A DNA stretch of 64,000 nt from Entomortierella parvispora E1425 (taxonomy: Eukaryota > Fungi > Mortierellomycota), in NCBI GenBank assembly GCA_020891255.1, contig BQFW01000011.1:186001-250000 (forward strand), in the 5' to 3' direction. This document shows, in pieces, positions 8,690-19,100 of this stretch. How positions within the stretch are numbered: the stretch's first letter is position 1; each line of letters begins with the position of its first letter. The notes beneath the pieces are model-generated. The model was not told the origin of the DNA, ran no database searches, and was given only the letters and a program-made list of their open reading frames with translations. Both the position numbers and the translations under genes were made by a program.

Positions 8690-9265
8690 GCCCTTTCAGC
8701 ACAGGCAACCGCCATTACGCCGCCATTTGTCAGTGCAGTGTCAGGACCCATGGGTTGAACCGTCCGGGGACCGGAGACCTTGCTTGATATTATAGTCGCG
8801 TCGTCGCTTGTTGTCCTGCTCGTCCTAGCGGTCCTGGAGCGCTGCATTGCATCCTGGGCAAGGATGAGAGTTGAAAGCGTCGACGGTGACGACATAACTG
8901 CTGGGATTGCTGAGGAGCATGACTGACCGGCAAGGATGTTGGCCAGTTTTGAAGAACTGTGAGTAGCCGGTGAAAGCGTTGGCTGCACTGTTGTATTCGA
9001 ACTCTAGCGATGGAAGCTACTGATCACATAATCCTAGTTCAACTGCTTGTTGTTGATAAGGCTCGTAACAGATCTTCATTGCCTTGTTCATAATTTCTGC
9101 CTGTCCATCGGTCTATGGGTGGTGAGCCGCCTGCAGCGCCAACTTCACATCCAGTCGTTCGTGCCACTCCTGCCAGAACGTCCTTGTAATCCGCGTGTTG
9201 TAGTCCGATATAATATAGTGGGTATACAATGCCTGTCACCAAAACACAATATCACGTGATTAGTA
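8690..9265 (-). mobile_element. Ty3/gypsy integrase relic, C-terminal half
   Basis: Translates with stops and frameshifts to IISDYNTRITRTFWQEWHERLDVKLALQAAHHP*TDGQAEIMNK..LPSLEFEYNSA..TGYSQF..QDR*DEQDNKRRRDYNIKQG. This matches the gypsy integrase consensus (IVSDRD..FW..TAYHPQTDGQTE..LPLAEFAYNS..ANKRRR). Confidence 0.8.
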
Positions 9266-9279
9266 TCAGTGTTTACAAT

Positions 9280-9415
9280 TCTGGATTGAAGCGAACCAAG
9301 TGTACCTCAATGTAGCCCTTTTCCGGGAGTAGCCCTTGACCCGCCTCGGGTTGAACTACGTGTTTGGATTCCAGCGTCTTGCTGGTGTTGATCGTGTTCA
9401 CACGGTTCAAGGTGT
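9280..9415 (-). ncRNA. Putative omegaRNA-like scaffold overlapping the Fanzor 3' end
   Basis: Three consecutive stem-loops (9388-9410, 9371-9385, 9329-9359) in the low-complexity ORF tail after the RuvC-III motif. This is where TnpB/Fanzor omegaRNAs are encoded. Boundaries are inferred. Confidence 0.5.
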
Positions 9416-12400
9416 GGACGAAATGGTGCTAAAGGGATTCTTTCTTGATCCTGAATAGCAGAAAACCCCGATATGCCAATGCACACGCATGCTTGCGTGT
9501 CCCGAGGTCGAGTTGTATAGCCATTCTTGAACGCAGGGCATGCCGTGTTGTCGCACTCTTTTGACCCGTTCACTAGTACGGTGTTGACCGTCTTTCCCTT
9601 ATCAGTTGTGACTAATCTCCTTGAGCGTGCCGAGTGAGTTTTCTTAAAGCAGAAGCAGCAACGTTGGGTCGACATGTACTCATCAGTAACAACCACGGTT
9701 CCAACCTGGCGATGTTGTTTCCTGATATTCTTGCCTCCTAGGCGGTAATGCCCACCAATTCTAGACCCCACACCAGTACCGGCGGCGCCCATGAATATCA
9801 CATGGCGAACGACTGGGGTAGTCTTCACACAATAGGAGGGGTGGCTGTATGGAGCTGGTATACGGGACTTGGATATTTCGACGCGCTCGCAATTGGAGCA
9901 ATAGCCTGTAGATTTGTCCACACATGGTTCGCCACGCATGTCTTCAGCCAGTCTGTTGATCGTATATTCTGCGGATCTGGAACGCAGATTACTGGTGACT
10001 TTGGCCCAAGATCTCACTGTCCGGTGTCTACAAGTTCGACGAAGCTTGATAAGCTCGGGATCTCCATTAAGAGCCTGCAGGTGAGCACTCAGTCCTTCAA
10101 TTGATCCGCGAGCGTTCATGGCTTGCTGGACACGGTCGAGAGTGGAGGCTGTCGCGAGAGATGAATCCGGGTCCGAAAGCATTTGTAGATCAGCCTTTGC
10201 CTGCTTGTGCTTGTCTGATCTGAGCAACTGCTCTCGTTTTTTGCGAAGTTTTCGTGCAAATGAGATATCGTCAACCTGGCGTGCTGTTATCCGATGAGCC
10301 TTGGGCAGTTTCATACCCTGTACAGCCTTTTTGGCATGTACACGCTGCTCCATTGTCCACGCCACTGGAACTGCATCCTCCGGCTCAGCCTGGGCCTCCT
10401 CTGGCTCTGGCTCATTGAGGTCTATAGACACATAAAATTAGAACTGTGTTCAATAGTATTGAAATCCATGCCTGTCACGTATGATGAGACTCACCTGCCA
10501 GTAGCTGAAATCTGTTGACTGATTCGCGTATTCCCTCCACGGTCAGAAAAACATTCTCTGACATCACTCTCACGCCCGGATCTTCGGCCAAGATGGCTAC
10601 TACCTGGGTCCGCTTTGAAATGGGACACGGTTTAAGATGGTGCTCAAATAATGGATCAAGATCCAGGCGCTGCGGAACGTCCTCTGCTTGCGGCCGATCC
10701 CACCTTGGAGAAATCTGAAGAGTCTTGTTTGCGCTGGCCTTGGCTCTCTTCTTTGGGTTGTCCTTTGGTGCCTTTTTCTTCGACATTGCCAAAAGTCGGT
10801 TCCAATAGTAGAGCGCTTTTTTTGATCGCTCCCACGTATCATCAAGTTGCCGGAACCTCCCTTCTTTCTTTCTGAGCGTGGCCTGCTTAACCTTGAGATC
10901 CAACATTAATTGGTTTTTGTGGCCGTCACCTTCACTGCCACCGTTGCTGTAACTCCTAGGCAAGGCTCTGATGTTGCTGTTGAGTTGGTTACAGTCTCGC
11001 CGAAGAGAAACGATCTCCTTACGAGGGCCTTCCCGCTCCTTGGCTTTCATTTCAACGCTTGCTTTGGCTATCTCCACCTGATGCTCCACGTCGCCCTTGG
11101 AAAGACCACTCCGCTCAAATTCAATACGCCAACGTGCAGTCTTCCCGTTTGATAGGCCCTTACTAGCTTTCCTATTATCATCGAAGGCGCTCCTTATTGG
11201 ATATCGAGTATCTCCGATCTGGGGCCCGGACATGTTTAGAGTAAACTCATCGACGAAGGACATTCTAAAATATTTTACCATAACATCGTTAGTCTTGCTA
11301 TGAGCAACTGTGAACTACTTCAGCTGAAACAAGGGATAGTTGCAACATAAATTACCTCGTTCCAAATTGAAATCCGTGCTTCTTGCATATGGCGTCGATT
11401 TTGTCGATATCAAAAAAATTTGCAAAGACTGCCCTTTTTGCCATCAAGGATCCAACGCAGTCTGTTACATTTGTTATAATGCCAAGGTCGCCGTTGATAT
11501 CATACCGTCCACCCATGGGGCCACTGAGCACCTCGTATATGTGGCGAGCGCCCAAGTGCAAGCCGTGCAGTTTTCCTGAAGAGATGACAGGAGACAATCG
11601 TCGAGTGAATTCAACCTGACCTAAAAGACGTAGGATGGCGTTCGATATAAGCACTATTGGAGCGCGAAGGACAATGTGTGGAGTGTGTGGGCGGTAGTCA
11701 TCGTCCTGCGCGTTCCTCCATCGGCGAGGGACATAGGGACGGAGGGCGTTGATGATCTTCTGGGCGACCATGAGCTGATTCTCCGTAAAAGATGTGCCCT
11801 TGTAAACAGTGTCTTTGATGTGGGTCATGGTGAAAGTCGAGCACGGTAGCGGTGATTCAAGCAAGGTTTTAACGATTGCTTGCAGACTGCGAAGCGTTCA
11901 GCGGCTCGGCTCCTTCTCTTTCTCTTCTGGTCCGGAAGCACTTTGATTTTCACCGCATGATATTTCTGTTTCCATCATAAACCCGCCGTCAAGTTCGTTT
12001 AGGAAGTCCTGACTCTCGAAAAGACACAAGTCAAGATCGTCATCGGCGAATAAATCCTCTGGATCGTCATCGGGCAATACATCCTCTGGATCGCCAGCAT
12101 TGCCTAGACCTGTCCCAGAGAGCTGAGTTTCCGAAAGTTTCTGGAAGGATTTGCTGGCGTTTGCATCAGCTGGGAGAGGCTTTTTGGCATAGAGCCGCAG
12201 GAGTGGAACCACAAAATGCTGGAGTTGATCCAGGCGGCCATTGGAATGGTATCGGGCAATGTTATCCATCAGCCTGGACATTGCGTGACGCCATTGGGAT
12301 CGACTAAGACTGTCTGGAATGGCGTCCTTCGCCGCTTTTTTTTCCTCCTTATTTTTGACAGCCTTAATCTTTCGCTCCTTGTGCGCCGCTGCCCGGTTCG

Positions 12401-14385
12401 GAGCCAACCATGCCGACAAAAGGTAACGGAGTAGATAGTCAAGTGCCTTTTCATACACGTTGCCTTCCCACAGATTCTTGATTGCTGTAGAGCATTGGCG
12501 AGTGTGCGCCTCGACAACTGATGAGTAGCCATCCTTGTAGGGAATAGTAACACCTGGCACTTTGTTGTCGATGATTGTCGACAACTCACGCCACTTTGGA
12601 TGGCCGTCGCCGCTCTTAGCAAGAAGTTTGCCCCGGTCGTCTCCATTCTCCTTGAATACTGTGTGCATATTACTTAGATGATTCTGGGAAAGGAGGTTTC
12701 GGATGTCGTTGTGCATGCCAGAGTTCTTGTTTTCAATGCCAGCCTGTTGTGTTGCGACTGGTGCGACGTGGATAATCCTCTGTTCTGGGGAAACGATGTA
12801 CCCTGGCGGGAGAATGTTGGTCAAATCTAAAGTGCTGTCCTGCCCCATACAGGCACCGGCTCCTGCCTGGAAACAACAACAATAAAAAAAAAAGGATCAA
12901 TTGTCTGCAACTACAGCAGCTGATGAAGGGAGCTCACCAGCTGACGATCTCGATGGCCGTTGAATGTCGACTTACCAAGATCGTTCCGATCTGTGCCAAG
13001 AGATATAGCGATCGCTCAACGTCGGTGACGTGCGCCTGTGCCTCATGAAGAAGATTAAGGATTCTGCCGTAGTCCTCGTCATTTGAAAGGCTTGGATGAA
13101 GAATCTGCTTCAAAGTCACCGTGCACGTACGCCAGTCGTCATCATTCTCCTCATCCTCGCCTGCAATAGGTGTCTTGGGCTCTCCGCCTTCATCCGGATT
13201 GGATCCCTTTCGTTTCTTTCCTTTGTCAGGTTCCGGTTGAATGGTTCCCAAATTTTTCTCGCATTCTTCCCATATGTTGTCGAATTTTGCTTCCACAACG
13301 TTGCACCATATTCGTAGGTTGTTCTTGTTGGTTGCTGTAGTAATGTCAGAAGTCACCTTGCTACGTTTCATTGGGTGGTCATTGCGATTGATGTAGATGT
13401 CGGCGGCATCCACAAGAGGACCTTTTGGTAAACTCTTTTGGTTCAATAGTCGTTGCTTGAACTCCTGTTTTCCCTCCACTTCCTTATTTTTGCTGTCGTT
13501 CAGCTTGCCAATATGCTCCTGTATTTTCACTTCCAAATGCTTATAACTAAGGAAGCAGAAAATCATCAACAAAAGTCCTCGTTTACGAGTTCTTGATCAA
13601 TACATACTTGAATATCAACCTTACCATGACTCCTCAAAGCAAACAAGTAATTCAGCCTTCATATTATCGTCCGGCCCTTTCCCATAGTGGATCTTTCGTT
13701 TGTTCGCCCGGAACGTGGCAGCATTGGTAGGTGATGAAACGGTGTCAACAGGAGACGAGTGGTTAACGGAAGACGGAACCAGCTCACTCACAGGAGCCAC
13801 CACTAAATCGTCCACCACCTGGTCCATAGGAGTAAGGATGAAATTGTCGATAGGCACAAGGACTAGATATTCCGAGAATTTCAGAAATGAGTCCACTCTG
13901 TGGAAAAATCCACAAACTCGCGGTTGAGACGGGCCTTCTCTTGTTGGACAATAGACTCTGGGTTTTCCTCGACTGGAAAATAAGAAGATTTTGCAGTTGA
14001 GCCGTTCTGCAAGAAACACGAACAGGAGCTGCGTTCTCATTGGGAGTCCTGATAAAACTGGGTTGTCGCTGGTGTTGACTGATAGCTGCAGGTCGAATTT
14101 ACCGCGTGGCTGCAAGAAATTCTGGGTAATAAAATGAGCCACTGAACTGCTAGGGTCTACGGGGTGAGGATCCGCACGGAGCCCATGGTTGCGAAGAGCC
14201 CACAAAGCCTTTTCCGCCTTTTCGCCACAAGACTGGATCCTTGGGTCCTTGGACGCATTTTCGAGAATATGCATAAAGTTGGCGGATGGTTGTGACCACG
14301 AGGACTGATGACTCTCGACGAGGCGAGAAAAGTCGTGTGGCGGATCGGTCCCAGGGCGCGCCACGACGTCAAGCGTGAATGTCAT
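9307..14385 (-). pseudogene. Giant intron-containing Fanzor (eukaryotic TnpB-like RNA-guided nuclease) gene with one in-frame nonsense codon; the true 5' end probably lies beyond the LINE insertions (ATG 17418)
   Basis: Exons 14385-13625, 13546-12976, 12866-11356, 11264-10495, 10421-9307. GT-AG introns with consistent phases; total 4,728 nt = 1,576 codons. RuvC-I EDPG (D codon 10580-10582), VIFMG, TDEYMST (E 9679-9681), CCFC...CDNTAC zinc finger, RDTQA (D 9499-9501). In-frame TGA at 11898-11900. Confidence 0.85.
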
Positions 14386-14540
14386 TGTTAGGGATGAACT
14401 GGAATCAGTTGGTCAATGAACGAGTCAGCAATCGGTCAACAATGGTGAAGAGTCAAAAACTGAAGGTCGTGGATTCGGCTTATGCCTAAGCCACCGAGAC
14501 ATAAATTGATTTGGGGGACGCGAAGTTGGAAGGTGTCTCT

Positions 14541-16059
14541 TTGGACAACCTCTCCGTCGTCAACAACTTCAACAAATTGGTCAAACACAGAGATAGGGCA
14601 ACTACCAGAGAGAAGATGAGATGCAACCTTGCAATCCAATGGGCTGTCGTTGCCCATGCATGCAACATACGACAGGGCGCGGTTGAGGTCTGCTGGGTAA
14701 AGGGACATAGTGGCGACCCAGGAAACGAGGAGGCAGATAGGACTGCTGTTAATGCGCAAACATCAGACTCAATGCCGTGGACAATCAATCAGTCACACCA
14801 ACAGGACTTTCAGTTTGGGGCACAATTCTTACAGACAAATATTGACACAGACGTCCGCCGCCTAGTTCGCCATCAATCGTGCATCAGGGACCATTGTTCA
14901 TGGATGGCACTGAAGCAAACCAAAAAAATGAACCTGGACAGCAGCGACATACACTGGCAGTCGACCCTCGACATTGTACACAACAATAACAACACAGGAT
15001 CCTTTTATACCTCACCAAGAGATTCGTCGCTACGCAGTCATCGCGTCAAGAAGCTGTGCGGAGTGCTCCCAACCCAAGATCTCCAACACACCCGTCGCCC
15101 AGACATCTACCTCAACGCTCTTTGCCCTTGTTGCGAGGACCAGGACGAGAGCAATGAACACTTGTGGAACTGCGATGCACACATTGCAGCAGAACGAAAG
15201 GTCTGGACCAAGACAATAGAGGCCATTGCAGAATGGGCACATCTGGAAGAGGCACGCTTACGGAGAACATGGGCAAAAGAGCGAGATCGTCACATACAGA
15301 ACCATCTACCTTTCACTAAGGCAGCCCCCAAAATATCAGTACCAAGCGACCGCGCCGTCTGGACCACATTACAACACATAACGGGAACAGTGGAGCGTGC
15401 TCCATGGGATGTCCGGAAAGCAGCTCAGACGGTGGCGGAGAGGGCACTCCAGCAATGGAAGGTGGCTGACCTGTACAGCGGGATCTCACCTCATAGCCTT
15501 ACCCAAGTGTGGAGCAAGCTCTTTAAGACCAACATCACCACGGCCCAAAACCTCGTCCACCGTTTCTGCCGCGCTCTCGAGGAAGGGATTCGAGAGGCAG
15601 TCTGGCTGGACCGTTGCAATAGACAGATTGCAATGGAAAAAGAACAAGCAATCACCAAGAAGATGAAGAGAACACTGCCACCGAGACAACAAGGAGCGCA
15701 AGTCAACCCATGGCGATCCTGAGTCGGAGCACCACCCGCGGAGGATGAGTGCGAATGCGGACAATTACTAGACAACCACAGGAACAACACTTGCCCCGGT
15801 TTTACGGGCGAAGCCATCGAAGCGGATATAATTCTGCTGGACACATATCTAGGTCGGCGACGACCAGCAGTGATGGAAAGGATGGGAAGTTGTAAATTTT
15901 TATTGTCGTGAGGCGACCTAGACCTCGGGTTCTTCTCTTTTTAAAAGAGGAGAGCGACGCAACGGTCGCGTACGGCTCTGGATGCAGAAGCATGCGATTG
16001 AAACAGTGGCTTAGGTCACATTTCTATAGGCCCCTTGTCAATAAAAAAAAAAAAAAAAA
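14541..16059 (+). mobile_element. 5'-truncated non-LTR retrotransposon copy 1 (RNase H C-terminus, Cys/His motifs, 3' UTR, poly(A))
   Basis: WVKGHSGDPGNEEADRTA (RNase H), CPCCEDQDESNEHLWNC, and C-terminal CECGQLLDNHRNNTC after an in-frame TGA at 15720-15722. Poly(A) at ~16043-16061. Flanked by the exact direct repeat AAGTTGGAAGGTGTCTCT (14523-14540 and 16060-16077). Confidence 0.85.
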
Positions 16060-16077
16060 AAGTTGGAAGGTGTCTCT

Positions 16078-16102
16078 CCAGGCCCCTTGTCAATAAAAAA
16101 AA
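16078..16102 (+). mobile_element. Minimal 3'-end-only copy of the same non-LTR element
   Basis: GGCCCCTTGTCAATAAAAAAAA is identical to the 3' end of copy 1 (16029 onward) and lies between two copies of the target motif. Confidence 0.6.
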
Positions 16103-16123
16103 GAAGTTGGAAGGGTGTCTTCA

Positions 16124-17348
16124 CAACGTACCATGGACAATCAATCAATCGAATCAACAGGACTTCTACTTTGGCGCACAATTCCTGCGAACGAACGTTG
16201 ATACCGATGTTCGTCGTCTTGTTCGACATCAGTCATATATCAGGGATCATTGTGCATGATTGGCGCTCAAGCAAACCAAAAAGACGAGCCTAGACAGCGA
16301 CTATATCCACTGGAAGTCCACACTGGACAATGTGCACAACAACAACAACACCGGATCCTTTTATACCAGTCCAAGAGACCCCTCGCTGCGCGGGCGTCGG
16401 GCTAAAAAGCTCCATGGAGTCCTCCCAAGACAAGACATTCAACACCACTGGCGACCATATATCTACCCCCCAGCCCTATGCCCCTGATGCCACGACCAGG
16501 AAGAAAGCAATGAACACCTTTGGAACTGTAAACCACATCTTGCAGACGAGCAGAAGGTCTGGCGCCGGACACTAGAAACCATGGCGAAATGGACACATCT
16601 GAAGGAGGTACTTTTAAGACGGGTGTGGGCTGAAGAACGAGACCTCCACCAACAGAAGCAAGAGCCTTTCAACAGAAAAACACCTAAACTGACGACGCTA
16701 GGCGACCGTGCCATATGGACATCATTGGAGCACATATCAGGCGTGGTCGATCCTGCACCTTGGGATGTAAGCAAGCCAGCTCGTACAACAACAGAGAAGA
16801 CCCTACGCCAATGACCTGTGGCAGATCTCTACCGTAGGATCTCACCCCACAGTCTCGCCCAAGTATAGGGCCAACTCTTCAAGACCAACATCACAACAGA
16901 CCAAAATATAGCTCACCGGTTCTGCCGAGCACTTGAGGGCAGCACCCGAGAGGCAGTTTGGCTGGATCGGAGGCAAATAGCGATGGAAAAAGAACAGACG
17001 GAATTTCCCCCACTGAAACAACCCGGAGAACCGACCACTGCATGGAGAACATGGGCGGGCGCAACACCAGCAGAGGATGAGTGCGACTGCGGCCAAGTGA
17101 TGGACAAACACACGAACAACAAGTGCCCAAGATTTACAGGCGAGAACATCGAAGCGGATATCTTTCTGCTGGACACATATCTTGGCCGGCATTGGCCAGC
17201 AGTGATGGAGAAGATAGGAAGTAGTAAATTTTTATTGTCTTGAGGCGACCCTTGACCTCGGGTTCTCTTCTAACAGGAAGAGAGCGACGCGGCTCTGGGT
17301 GCAGAAGCATGCGATTGTACACACCCTTTGTCAATAATTTAAAAAAAA
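16124..17348 (+). mobile_element. 5'-truncated, more decayed non-LTR retrotransposon copy 2
   Basis: Collinear with copy 1 from WTINQS onward, with multiple stops (16257-16259, 16812-16814, 16866-16868). A-rich tail. Flanked by exact TTGGAAGGGTGTCTTCA at 16107-16123 and 17349-17365. Confidence 0.85.
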
Positions 17349-17418
17349 TTGGAAGGGTGTCTTCATTTGTACACTCTTTTGCTTCGTCGTCGCCGCTCGT
17401 CTGGATATCTAATTCCAT
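17349..17418 (-). pseudogene. Probable displaced 5' coding segment of the Fanzor-like gene
   Basis: ATG at 17418 follows a pyrimidine-rich leader and gives MELDIQTSGDDEAKECTNEDTLP. Removing the LINE array joins this to TSRPPNQFMSRWLRHK at ~14524, in the same frame as the 14385 ORF. Two stops near 14410-14425 would need an intron or further mutations. Confidence 0.55.
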
Positions 17419-17769
17419 TGAGAAGAAGGCGAGAGAGGAAGAGAGGAACTTAGAGAGACTAGGTAAAGAATCAACCACCATCTGAGCACTGCAAGAAGAA
17501 GGATGTCCGGACAACGCCCACGACCAGAGGACGGAATCCGAACTCACGTCAGTCGTCACATGACACGCTTAAGGCTTTAAGGGTCTCTGCAACGCTCCGC
17601 CACGGTGCCCATGGCTCTTCTCCCACAGGTCTTTCCACCGGAAGGAAAACATAGTTTTATTTGTTGTGTTGTGAGGCTCACAGTTATGAAAAATTCTAGA
17701 CATCATGATGGCTCCTTCAAAAGTTATTGCACTTGGAGATATTCTTGTCGGGACTAGATGACTTGCACC

Positions 17770-19100
17770 ATAGACAAAAAAATGTAGTAGTACCGGGAAC
17801 AAAGTGCGCGAGCTTGGCGAGCTTGTCGACAAAGACCGTGATGGCGTTGAAGTTGCGATTTGCTGGAGGAAAGGGCCGATGAAGTCCACGGTGACTACGC
17901 TGATATGGGATCGGAAGGGCAGCCACAGTCCCGCAGGCAGTTCCTGAGATCCTTTGTTCCTTCGACACTTTTCGCAGGGCGGCAACATGGCTCCAGATGT
18001 CCTTGGCGATGTGCGGCCATACACGTAGCGGCGCAGGTTGTCGTTGGTCCTTGAAAGCCAAAGTGTCGTCAGGGGAGAGTGAGAGCATGTGATCCTCTTC
18101 GAAGTAGAGCTCATTGTGGAATGAGTAGCCATGGGCGACTTTGGCAGACAATCCTTCTTGATGGGTCCTAGTAAACGTCATTGGTAATGAGCGTTGGAGG
18201 ATAGAGACAGACTGAGGTTGTCCTTCACAGGGGTCAGGGTCGTGGTCCTCCGGCAGGCACGAGAGAGCTTGTCGACGACTGAGCATAGGATGCGTGGGGA
18301 AGCGACGGTGATCAGCGTGGTCGATGTTGACAGCGTTGCCTGGTAATGTCGAGCATGGACGACGGTTAATAGACAGCTCCTAATGGCAGAGTACATTGTT
18401 CCGTCTAGTTTGATGGTCGATGTGGAGCAGCACTGGGCCCATGGCGACAGCGGATGCATCCGTGATGATGGTCATGAGGTCAGAGTTGATGCTGTTGGTC
18501 CACATGAAGGAAAGGGAGGAAGGGAGCAAAGGAGAAAAGGAGAAAAGAGAGAAAAGAGAGAAAAGAGAGAAAAAGGAAAGAGAGAGAAGAGACTTGTCTC
18601 TTTACTGGTCTTTTTGGTCTTTGATCGGTGTCGAAGGGTTGGATATCTCCATCTGTCCTGTCTGGCTATAATAGGGGGTGGAGGCAGTGGTCCCTGGCGG
18701 ATGTTCTTTAGAGGAAACATCCTTGGGAATTAGACGGATGGTGTCCTGTGGGCCAAGGTGTTGGAGAACGAGGGTGCGCGAGAGAGGCGAGTTTTCTTTC
18801 TTTCTTGGGCAGAGAATGGCATCTCGTGCATGATGAGGAAGGAATGAGAGTCGATATTTCAAGGGGTGCATCCATGCAGGCGAACAGAGGAGAGGCCCAC
18901 TCGACTAGAGCCTTTATTGTTCTGGGCCATGATCAGGTGGAAGTGGTGGCGCACCAGGGCTAGCACCTGCGTCCTGCGCAAGGGCCCGAGGCAGCAGCAA
19001 CGACCTGCCTGGATCGGACATTGCTTCTATGGCGAAGTCCGAGGAGGCAGGTCCCTTCCTCGCTCGGTGGTTGCTTCAAGCGCTCCTCGACGGAGCTTTT
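17770..19100 (-). mobile_element. Ty3/gypsy pol relic (RT, RNase H and integrase N-terminal half)
   Basis: Fragments TDASAVAMGPVLL (RNase H), MLSRRQA, CEKCRRNK..PAGL, TVDFIGP, VFVDKLAKLAHFVPGTTT (integrase). Heavily frameshifted; no LTR identified. Confidence 0.7.

Follow-up and report, generated by a model that had tools for sequence, protein, structure and literature searches.

A decayed mobile-element copy of Entomortierella parvispora and its probable giant Fanzor1-type nuclease gene

Among the TnpB/Cas12 RNA-guided nucleases, Fanzors form the eukaryotic branch; the literature describes them as compact, at about 600 amino acid residues, and they are in development as genome editors. Their mean length is 620 residues (PMC10530073). 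Of the Fanzor1 proteins compared here, SpuFz1 of Spizellomyces punctatus (PDB 8GKH/9CEY), PpFz1, and GtFz1, the first has 638 residues (PMC10432273). Bao and Jurka described the motif common to Fanzor and TnpB as D-X(125,275)-[TS]-[TS]-X-X-[C4 zinc finger]-X(5,50)-RD (PMC3627910). In Fanzors, the canonical RuvC-II glutamate is replaced by glycine or proline, and an alternative glutamate downstream is known as the “rearranged glutamate” (PMC10530073). A conserved pair, G500 and E536, is specific to Fanzor1 (PMC3627910).

The locus described here lies on the minus strand of a 64,000-nt stretch of the soil fungus Entomortierella parvispora E1425 (contig BQFW01000011.1, positions 186,001 to 250,000), which we call the window and number from its first letter. 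We consider it likely that the locus is a decayed copy of a mobile element whose only gene encodes a 1,576-residue nuclease of the Fanzor1 type, the rear half of which is probably an RNA-guided cutter. The gene belongs to a family that is real, conserved, and expressed, and in which a Fanzor1-type nuclease is joined to a large conserved addition; we infer its guidance by RNA and the part played by the front half.

Gene structure, splicing, and the gene family

Six minus-strand open reading frames (ORFs) of 170 to 374 residues lie in tandem across 14385–9307. A preliminary description of this DNA had joined them as five exons separated by four GT..AG introns; splicing at the same coordinates reproduces 4,728 nt in one frame, that is, 1,576 codons, with a single in-frame stop at codon 767. 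The window holds one copy of the gene.

Two sequencing runs of the assembly's own sample, X1 and X2, bear on the splicing. Run X1 (42 M letters) has even depth and is, therefore, genome-like; it retains the introns. Run X2 (25 M letters, 89,000 contigs) has zero depth across long stretches that X1 covers and is, therefore, taken as a transcriptome. A single X2 contig of 4,740 nt, with a depth of 56, consists of the segments 9305–10421, 10495–11264, 11356–12865, 12975–13546, and 13625–14384, that is, the five exons with exactly the four proposed introns gone. The intron phases, 2, 0, 2, and 1, recur, in unchanged order and at similar codon numbers, in the gene models of Mortierella alpina and Mortierella sp. 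GBAus27b. In addition, a deposited model of 681 residues, GJJ75451.1 (P0151), is identical to residues 895–1575 of the spliced model, with 0 mismatches, and therefore uses the last two introns. The layout, with the evidence for each part, is as follows.

13625–14385, minus strand: coding exon 1, codons 1–254 (partial), with the ATG at 14385–14383; X2 contig, and Met 1 aligned with the start Met of the homologues
13547–13624, minus strand: intron 1, 78 nt, GT..AG, phase 2; X2 joint 13546/13625, with a phase-matched intron in the M. alpina and GBAus27b models
12976–13546, minus strand: coding exon 2; splice model and X2 contig
12867–12975, minus strand: intron 2, 109 nt, GT..AG, phase 0; X2 segments pass from 12865 to 12975 with a 1-nt ambiguity, and the phase is conserved
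11356–12866, minus strand: coding exon 3, across the junction of the N-terminal region with the Fanzor-like half; X2 contig, and continuous and open in intact homologues
11898–11900, minus strand: in-frame TGA, codon 767, the inactivating lesion; the RNA contig, like both paralogues, has CGA (Arg)
11265–11355, minus strand: intron 3, 91 nt, GT..AG, phase 2, with ACTAAC; X2 joint 11264/11356 and P0151
10495–11264, minus strand: coding exon 4, ending just past RuvC-I; splice model and X2 contig
10422–10494, minus strand: intron 4, 73 nt, GT..AG, phase 1; X2 joint 10421/10495 and P0151
9307–10421, minus strand: coding exon 5, with RuvC-II, zinc ribbon, RuvC-III, and a disordered tail, stop codon at 9309–9307; ORF, splice model, and X2 contig
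17349–17418, minus strand: proposed sixth segment, not counted in the gene; start Met alignment and zero X2 depth

Co-splicing of the four introns in the gene family is thus a matter of observation. The sixth segment, which had been put forward as a probable 5′ extension, is unsupported as an exon because the Met at 14385 and the “GTDPP” motif that follows it align with the starts of the homologues, and because the X2 depth, 0.44 over 14421–14541, is 0 over 17325–17566.

The spliced model is collinear over about 1,560 residues with annotated proteins of 1,584 and 1,823 residues from other genera (BLASTP expectation values, E, from 0 to 1e-154), which places the gene model far beyond chance. 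An exhaustive HMMER search with the last ORF yielded 347 relatives. Full-length collinear homologues, of 1,445 to 1,823 residues, are found in M. alpina, M. antarctica, Mortierella spp., Actinomortierella ambigua, Gryganskiella cystojenkinii, and Modicella reniformis, so that the collinear giant proteins extend to at least five genera of the Mortierellaceae. Lunasporangiospora and Podila have models that are partial or cover the rear half, and the Mucorales Halteromyces and Mucor have shorter relatives. At least eight gene models of the family are present in GBAus27b alone. The preliminary description had suggested that the extra length is a feature of the lineage and that intact copies be sought in related fungi; the first is borne out by the collinear homologues, and the second by intact ORFs of 1,543 to 1,603 residues in several species. 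All homologues are annotated as “hypothetical”. No paper was found on a class of Fanzors of about 1,500 residues, nor one pairing “Fanzor” with “Mortierella”. Eight accessions of the family were not found in the part of the Saito et al. supplement that was searched, which does not prove their absence from it, and four accessions, together with the names Mortierella and Actinomortierella, were not found in the supplement of Yoon et al.

One might suppose instead that two adjacent genes have been wrongly joined, one for an N-terminal protein of about 766 residues and the other for an ordinary Fanzor of about 800 residues, with codon 767 as the natural stop of the first. That codon does fall exactly at the end of the acidic disordered linker between the halves, and there are deposited models of the rear half only, namely P0001 (785 residues), P0151 (681 residues), and P0008 (802 residues). 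However, P0151 begins past the stop of the window copy, P0001 begins past the frameshift of a paralogous locus, L002, and P0008 lies on a contig of 4.2 kb. The border itself is inside one continuous exon, codon 767 specifies arginine in the RNA contig as well as in the two paralogues, the reading frames of the intact homologues from four further genera continue across it without a break, and one RNA contig covers both halves. A false join of two genes is, accordingly, very unlikely, and we proceed with a single gene for the giant protein.

The nuclease module and the N-terminal addition

The rear half of the spliced protein carries, in order, EDPG at residue 1175, EYMST at 1452, CxxC at 1459–1462, CxxxxC at 1494–1499, and PRD at 1510–1512, all at the places where the preliminary description had put them. 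These motifs mark the following features.

9412–10681, minus strand: RuvC and zinc-ribbon (TNB) module, codons ~1143–1541; VIA-align, family profile, and conservation
10582–10580, minus strand: catalytic codon D1176
9681–9679, minus strand: catalytic codon E1452
9660–9538, minus strand: codons of the zinc cysteines, residues 1459–1499
9501–9499, minus strand: catalytic codon D1512

The elements of the Bao and Jurka motif are all present, as D1176, S1455-T1456, C1459/C1462/C1494/C1499, and R1511-D1512. The spacing between the RuvC-I Asp and [TS][TS] is 278 residues, 3 above the published range of 125–275, and the 11 residues from C1499 to R1511 fall within the range of 5–50. A glycine, G1416, in the sequence “FMGAAG”, lies 36 residues before E1452, a spacing equal to that of the G500–E536 pair.

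The fold was approached through an alignment, A1, of 48 family sequences over the rear ~800 residues. Searched against the sequences of the PDB, the A1 profile matched only SpuFz1 (E = 1.1e-4), PpFz1 (0.029), and Cas12f (0.14), the aligned stretch extending from the Glu across the zinc ribbon to “RD”. AlphaFold2 run on A1 gave a model with a pLDDT of 81 and a pTM of 0.70. With this model, the top Foldseek match is SpuFz1 (E = 7e-5, probability 1.0), followed by PpFz and GtFz, and then by Cas12b/h/p and Fanzor2. VIA-align places model residues 375–773 onto SpuFz1 residues 364–633, with Z of 13.9–14.2 and 259 residues aligned. The neighbours of the rear-half model in the ESM Atlas are all TnpB/Fanzor clusters, including a cluster of Mucoromycota fragments with a TM score of 0.81; viral Fanzor-like clusters of 601–622 residues align over model residues 1–781, with TM scores of just 0.42–0.43. 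Single-sequence searches of the PDB with two shorter relatives gave nothing useful, and word-indexed searches toward canonical Fanzors returned family members only.

The residues on which catalysis would depend are nearly invariant in A1: the Glu is found in 44 of 44 sequences, the RuvC-III Asp in 44 of 46, each Cys in 41–42 of 44, and the RuvC-I Asp in 25 of 29. Profile, conservation, and predicted fold together show the last ~430 residues as a Fanzor1-type RuvC and zinc-ribbon module, with a predicted catalytic set, D1176, E1452, and D1512 plus the four Cys, that is complete. The preliminary assignment to the Fanzor/TnpB type, which was to stand or fall with the modelling of the C-terminal ~400 residues as a RuvC and zinc-ribbon fold, thus agrees with the match to SpuFz1, and the models support a position of the rear half closest to Fanzor1 among nucleases of the TnpB/Fanzor type. 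For a place inside the Fanzor1 clade, the order of the PDB matches, with Fanzor1 ahead of Fanzor2 and Cas12, speaks indirectly only. The AlphaFold2 model of the rear half also contains a coiled-coil hairpin of about 110 residues. The rear ~800 residues would then be a complete Fanzor, consisting of a WED/REC-like part, the coiled-coil insert, the RuvC domain, and the zinc ribbon.

At 1,576 residues, the protein is, as first described, two to three times the usual Fanzor size of 620 (638 in SpuFz1). The figure of about 1,000 extra residues given at that time stands as to length; it now resolves into about 770 N-terminal residues with no known relatives, plus insertions inside the ~800-residue Fanzor-like rear half, namely the coiled coil and a larger RuvC insert. 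Identities to eight homologues are 24–42% for residues 1–250, 21–44% for residues 393–690, 26–46% for residues 771–1142, and 28–54% for the nuclease, residues 1143–1541. On these regional values, the front half is about as constrained as the nuclease.

The N-terminal region was modelled with AlphaFold2 on a homologue, P0153, from 18 sequences; this model is weaker, with a pLDDT of 60. Its layout is an alpha/beta domain at about residues 85–225, disordered Lys/Glu-rich linkers, a helical domain at 410–700, and an acidic linker. In the window, the two domains are as follows.

13636–14253, minus strand: N-terminal alpha/beta domain, codons ~45–250, with a weak OTU-like fold signal; AlphaFold2 model of P0153, domain pLDDT 72–87
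12129–13131, minus strand: conserved helical domain, codons ~393–690, including intron 2; 21–44% identity to eight homologues

The helical domain has no match in Pfam, among PDB sequences, or by fold. For the alpha/beta domain, the OTU deubiquitinase is the top named fold in the PDB, the AlphaFold DB clusters, and the ESM Atlas, all with weak scores. Most members have a His in an “HxVD” strand; two lineages have Asn or Gln in its place. Pfam OTU (PF02338) matched none of the 18 N-terminal sequences. An identity as an OTU cysteine protease was rejected on account of the weak scores and of the Glu/Asp that takes the place of the catalytic Cys; a degenerate OTU-like domain at the N terminus is, on these models, a lead only. 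Other searches of the region returned little. Pfam at E ≤ 1 gave no XPG_N/XPG_I or any other domain in the 18 N-terminal sequences; likewise, 12 full-length members had neither an XPG_N/XPG_I match nor one to any other Pfam domain at E ≤ 0.01, and no FEN1-like fold match was obtained. The N-terminal profile had low-complexity matches only among PDB sequences, a wide VIA-align search with the model returned generic helical hairpins only, and an ESM Atlas feature search gave noise at 0.68.

We read the N-terminal ~770 residues, with their OTU-like domain that lacks the catalytic Cys, Lys/Arg-rich linkers, the helical domain, and the acidic linker, as a putative accessory module outside the cutter, which would either bring the protein into the nucleus or dock it to host or ubiquitin-related proteins. 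The Lys/Arg-rich linkers look like nuclear localisation signals.

The mobile element, its copies, and its 3′ end

The gene is the only gene of a repeat unit, and two paralogous loci, L001 (BQFW01000002) and L002 (BQFW01000010), have 98.4–99.5% identity to the window over 9224/9237–14540 and 16064–17781. The features of the unit outside the coding region are as follows.

9224–17781, minus strand: whole repeat unit, including nested retroelement DNA; L001 and L002 match 9224/9237–14540 and 16064–17774/17781, with sharp ends
9233–9305, minus strand: intron of the 3′ untranslated region (UTR), 73 nt, GT..AG; X2 joint 9231/9305 (cut +1)
14541–16063, plus strand: retroelement fragment of the window copy only, with a ribonuclease H (RNase H) ORF at 14511–15722; absent from L001 and L002, Pfam RNase_H E = 3.4e-7
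16064–~17365 (inner boundary approximate), plus strand: older retroelement fragment, common to all three copies; paralogue alignment

The stretch 17366–17781 belongs to the unit, which measures about 7 kb in the window and about 5.4–5.7 kb in other species. In GBAus27b, it is about 5.45 kb (three copies compared, 98.5% identity), and in M. alpina about 5.65 kb (two copies, 93% identity). The ends are sharp in all three lineages, E. parvispora, GBAus27b, and M. alpina. The gene thus resides in a mobile element with several copies and defined ends.

The window copy is a pseudogene. It is inactivated, as the preliminary description had it, by one nonsense codon, TGA 767, and it also carries the private 1.5-kb retroelement insertion upstream. 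Each paralogue has a lesion of its own: L001 has a 1-nt deletion in exon 1, and L002 has A9 in place of an A8 homopolymer at about position 9480 of the L002 locus on BQFW01000010.1 (window-equivalent 12343), which is its sole frame-breaker. Changing the window sequence to that of the X2 contig, at 21 differing letters and one 3-nt insertion, yields an intact ORF, 1,576 codons long and followed by a stop. All 21 differing letters are L002 alleles, four of them found in L002 only, and the contig nonetheless reads A8, without the extra A of L002; the frameshift of L002 may, therefore, be an assembly error. From these sequences, L002 may be an intact, expressed copy, with the caveat that a k-mer assembler can follow the majority path. 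A sister copy of the window gene is transcribed and fully spliced, X2 being read as RNA from its behaviour.

The state of the copies could also mean that the family is a dead or domesticated relic, decaying repeats without current function, the RNA being background transcription. All three assembled copies do carry a lesion, the window copy sits amid retroelement debris, and other runs labelled as the same species lack the sequence words of the element. Yet each copy has just one private frame-breaking lesion, that of L002 being the single A that the RNA contig lacks; the intact ORFs of several species, the near invariance of the catalytic residues, and the complete splicing of the mRNA likewise speak against such a relic, to which we give very little probability. 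The runs in question are seven from other samples (X5–X11), which hold essentially none of the element's 31-mers, so that the element is strain-limited or the species label is loose.

At the retroelement insertion point of 14541–16063, L001 and L002 are continuous, with a 14-nt overlap at the junction. The two RNase H-bearing fragments are related, at about 71% nucleotide and about 65% amino acid identity. Both are on the strand opposite to the gene, one stacked on the other at a single site that lies about 155 nt ahead of the ATG. A systematic link between the element and an RNase H retroelement was considered and rejected, since the loci of GBAus27b and M. alpina lack the retroelement.

Several side observations concern the ends and the flank of the unit. 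A 734-nt contig of X2, with a depth of about 1,980 compared to 56 for the mRNA of the gene, shares 135 nt (17639–17773) with the 5′ end of the element and then runs into sequence that is absent from the window and from the ten loci L001–L010. Over the same 135 nt, the depth of X1 is about 1.5 times higher. The depth of this contig and the raised X1 depth indicate that the 5′ terminal piece has extra copies, at least one of them strongly transcribed. In a run from another sample, X3, a 329-nt contig with a depth of 584 has its sole match in the terminal 40 nt of the element (9225–9264), with 3 mismatches; X3 holds none of the rest of the element. In the 5′ flank, 17782–18290 on the minus strand, there is an open frame with “...ITVFVDKLAKLAHFVP”. 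We take this frame to resemble retroviral-type integrase cores, a likeness that is unconfirmed and for which Pfam gave no match. That the element was inserted inside an old long-terminal-repeat retroelement gene is an unconfirmed idea.

The ends themselves were compared in three families. No terminal inverted repeats (TIRs) were found, the alignment scores being equal to the shuffle mean in each, and no target-site duplication (TSD) was seen by eye in E. parvispora, GBAus27b, or M. alpina. Palindromes or hairpins lie 14–28 nt from the 3′ end in two lineages. Helitron-like ends, suggested by a 5′ TC in one family and by a hairpin plus CTAG in another, were dropped as inconsistent across the three families.

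An element of this kind raises the question of whether the RuvC module is RNA-guided at all, or whether the protein is instead the element's own transposase or recombinase-like enzyme, which would recognise the element ends directly. The unit has no other gene and has nevertheless reached at least three copies here and at least eight in GBAus27b; its lack of TIRs and TSDs, the palindromes or hairpins near its 3′ end, and the failure to detect an omega RNA would suit such an enzyme. On the other hand, every close structural relative that has been solved and assayed is an RNA-guided nuclease (PMC10432273, PMC10530073), Fanzor elements are, as a rule, described as non-autonomous and mobilised in trans (PMC3627910), and Pfam, PDB-sequence, and fold searches found no integrase-like or HUH-like feature in the N-terminal region. 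We judge a direct transposase role unlikely, and the reading of the module as a probable RNA-guided cutter is retained.

In TnpB and Fanzor systems, the guide would lie in the DNA that flanks the element. The 3′-UTR intron starts 1 nt past the stop codon and leaves 9 nt between its own end and the 3′ end of the element, and the message must, therefore, end in flanking DNA. Past the 9231/9305 joint, the main X2 contig contains the element's last eight letters and then stops where the flanks of the copies diverge. The signals for such an intron, namely a GT donor immediately after the stop, a CTRAY branch site, and an acceptor, occur in three other lineages, the splicing itself having been observed in E. 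parvispora: GBAus27b has a TAG|GTATGT donor and 82 nt (L003 11184–11265); M. alpina has TAG|GTAAGC and 74 nt (L006 9465–9538), with the acceptor 7 nt from the end of the element; and Actinomortierella has TAG|GTATTG and about 105 nt (L009 7841–7945). The lineage of P0016 is without this stop-flush arrangement. Cross-species nucleotide similarity is too low for a covariation analysis.

We infer both an RNA guide and nuclease activity for the giant protein, as follows. The 3′ end of the element itself, with the read-through transcript, would supply an RNA to which the predicted nuclease binds, and, so loaded, the nuclease would cut matching DNA beside a short motif. Such cutting would help the element to persist or spread, as proposed for TnpB and Fanzor. 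That the stop-flush intron bears on the formation of the guide RNA is a speculation: its removal would take away nearly the whole 3′ UTR, and the end of the coding RNA would then be 7–9 nt from a guide in the flank. A more ambitious picture combines a currently active, so far undescribed Mortierellaceae clade of RNA-guided Fanzor1-type proteins of 1,500–1,800 residues, an N-terminal module with a degenerate OTU-like domain that would couple DNA cutting to ubiquitin, chromatin, or another host pathway, and a guide RNA that depends on splicing; that all three hold jointly is unlikely.

A number of results weigh against the reading of the locus as a mobile element that encodes a Fanzor1-type, RNA-guided nuclease. 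Neither a transposase nor TIRs nor a TSD was found in the element. Pfam (PF07282/PF01385) gave no nuclease match to the six ORF pieces or to 12 full-length members at E ≤ 0.01, and two shorter relatives have sub-threshold PF07282 matches (E = 0.007 and 0.048). The identity to solved Fanzors is just 12–16%, and the VIA-align superposition covers mainly the RuvC domain and the zinc ribbon, the WED/REC assignment coming from loose alignments. The analysis identified no omega RNA: the last 256 nt at the 3′ end show no better folding than shuffles (z of -1.09), and Rfam had no match at the 5′ end of the element. The OMEGA-like system suggested in the preliminary description is thus, in the functional sense, putative. 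The OTU-like scores are weak (PDB E of 0.3–2.5, AlphaFold DB E of about 0.07, and ESM Atlas TM scores of 0.46 and 0.34), and the OTU catalytic Cys is not conserved in the family, which has Glu/Asp at that alignment position. Finally, X2 is labelled “DNA?”, and its RNA nature is read from behaviour alone; a DNA origin would make the contig a processed retrocopy, which would prove co-splicing equally.

Meaning and comparison with known systems

If the reading is true, a conserved and expressed lineage of two to three times the usual size would show that eukaryotic Fanzors, too, grew by the addition of modules, much as Cas12 arose from TnpB. The role of such additions in nuclear entry, in links to chromatin or ubiquitin, or in the control of activity could then be studied in a natural example. 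The element has one gene, and neither TIRs nor TSDs were found in it. Its 3′-UTR intron, which abuts both the stop codon and the end of the element, gives a concrete point of entry to the expression of a Fanzor element and to the possible production of its guide RNA in a host that has a spliceosome.

Compared with the OTU family (PF02338), the likeness is that OTU is the top named fold of the N-terminal alpha/beta domain and that the His of the “HxVD” strand is common. In contrast, the scores are weak, the position of the catalytic Cys is occupied by Glu/Asp, and the His is replaced in some members.

With TnpB of IS200/IS605 and IS607, and with Cas12f, Cas12j, and Cas12b, the giant protein is predicted to share the same RuvC and zinc-ribbon fold, and the element, like IS200/IS605, has palindromes near one end and is without TIR or TSD. 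It differs from TnpB in having its Glu in the Fanzor-type position, in its eukaryotic host and spliceosomal introns, in the lack of a TnpA partner, and in a protein three to four times the size of TnpB.

The likeness is greatest to Fanzor1. The RuvC-I motif is “DPG”; a Glu directly precedes [TS][TS]xxC; the CxxC...CxxxxC zinc ribbon is followed by “RD”; and, 36 residues ahead of the alternative Glu, a Gly stands where the canonical RuvC-II Glu would be. The best profile and fold matches are to Fanzor1, and the gene is, likewise, eukaryotic, intron-containing, repeat-borne, and a single ORF. The differences begin with the element, in which no TIR or TSD was found, and with the sequence, which has 12–16% identity to solved Fanzors and, in the giant family, is missed by Pfam PF07282. 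They extend to the coiled-coil hairpin of about 110 residues, to the 278-residue spacing between the RuvC-I Asp and [TS][TS], and to a length of 1,576 residues against the 638 of SpuFz1, with about 770 N-terminal residues that the solved Fanzors do not have.

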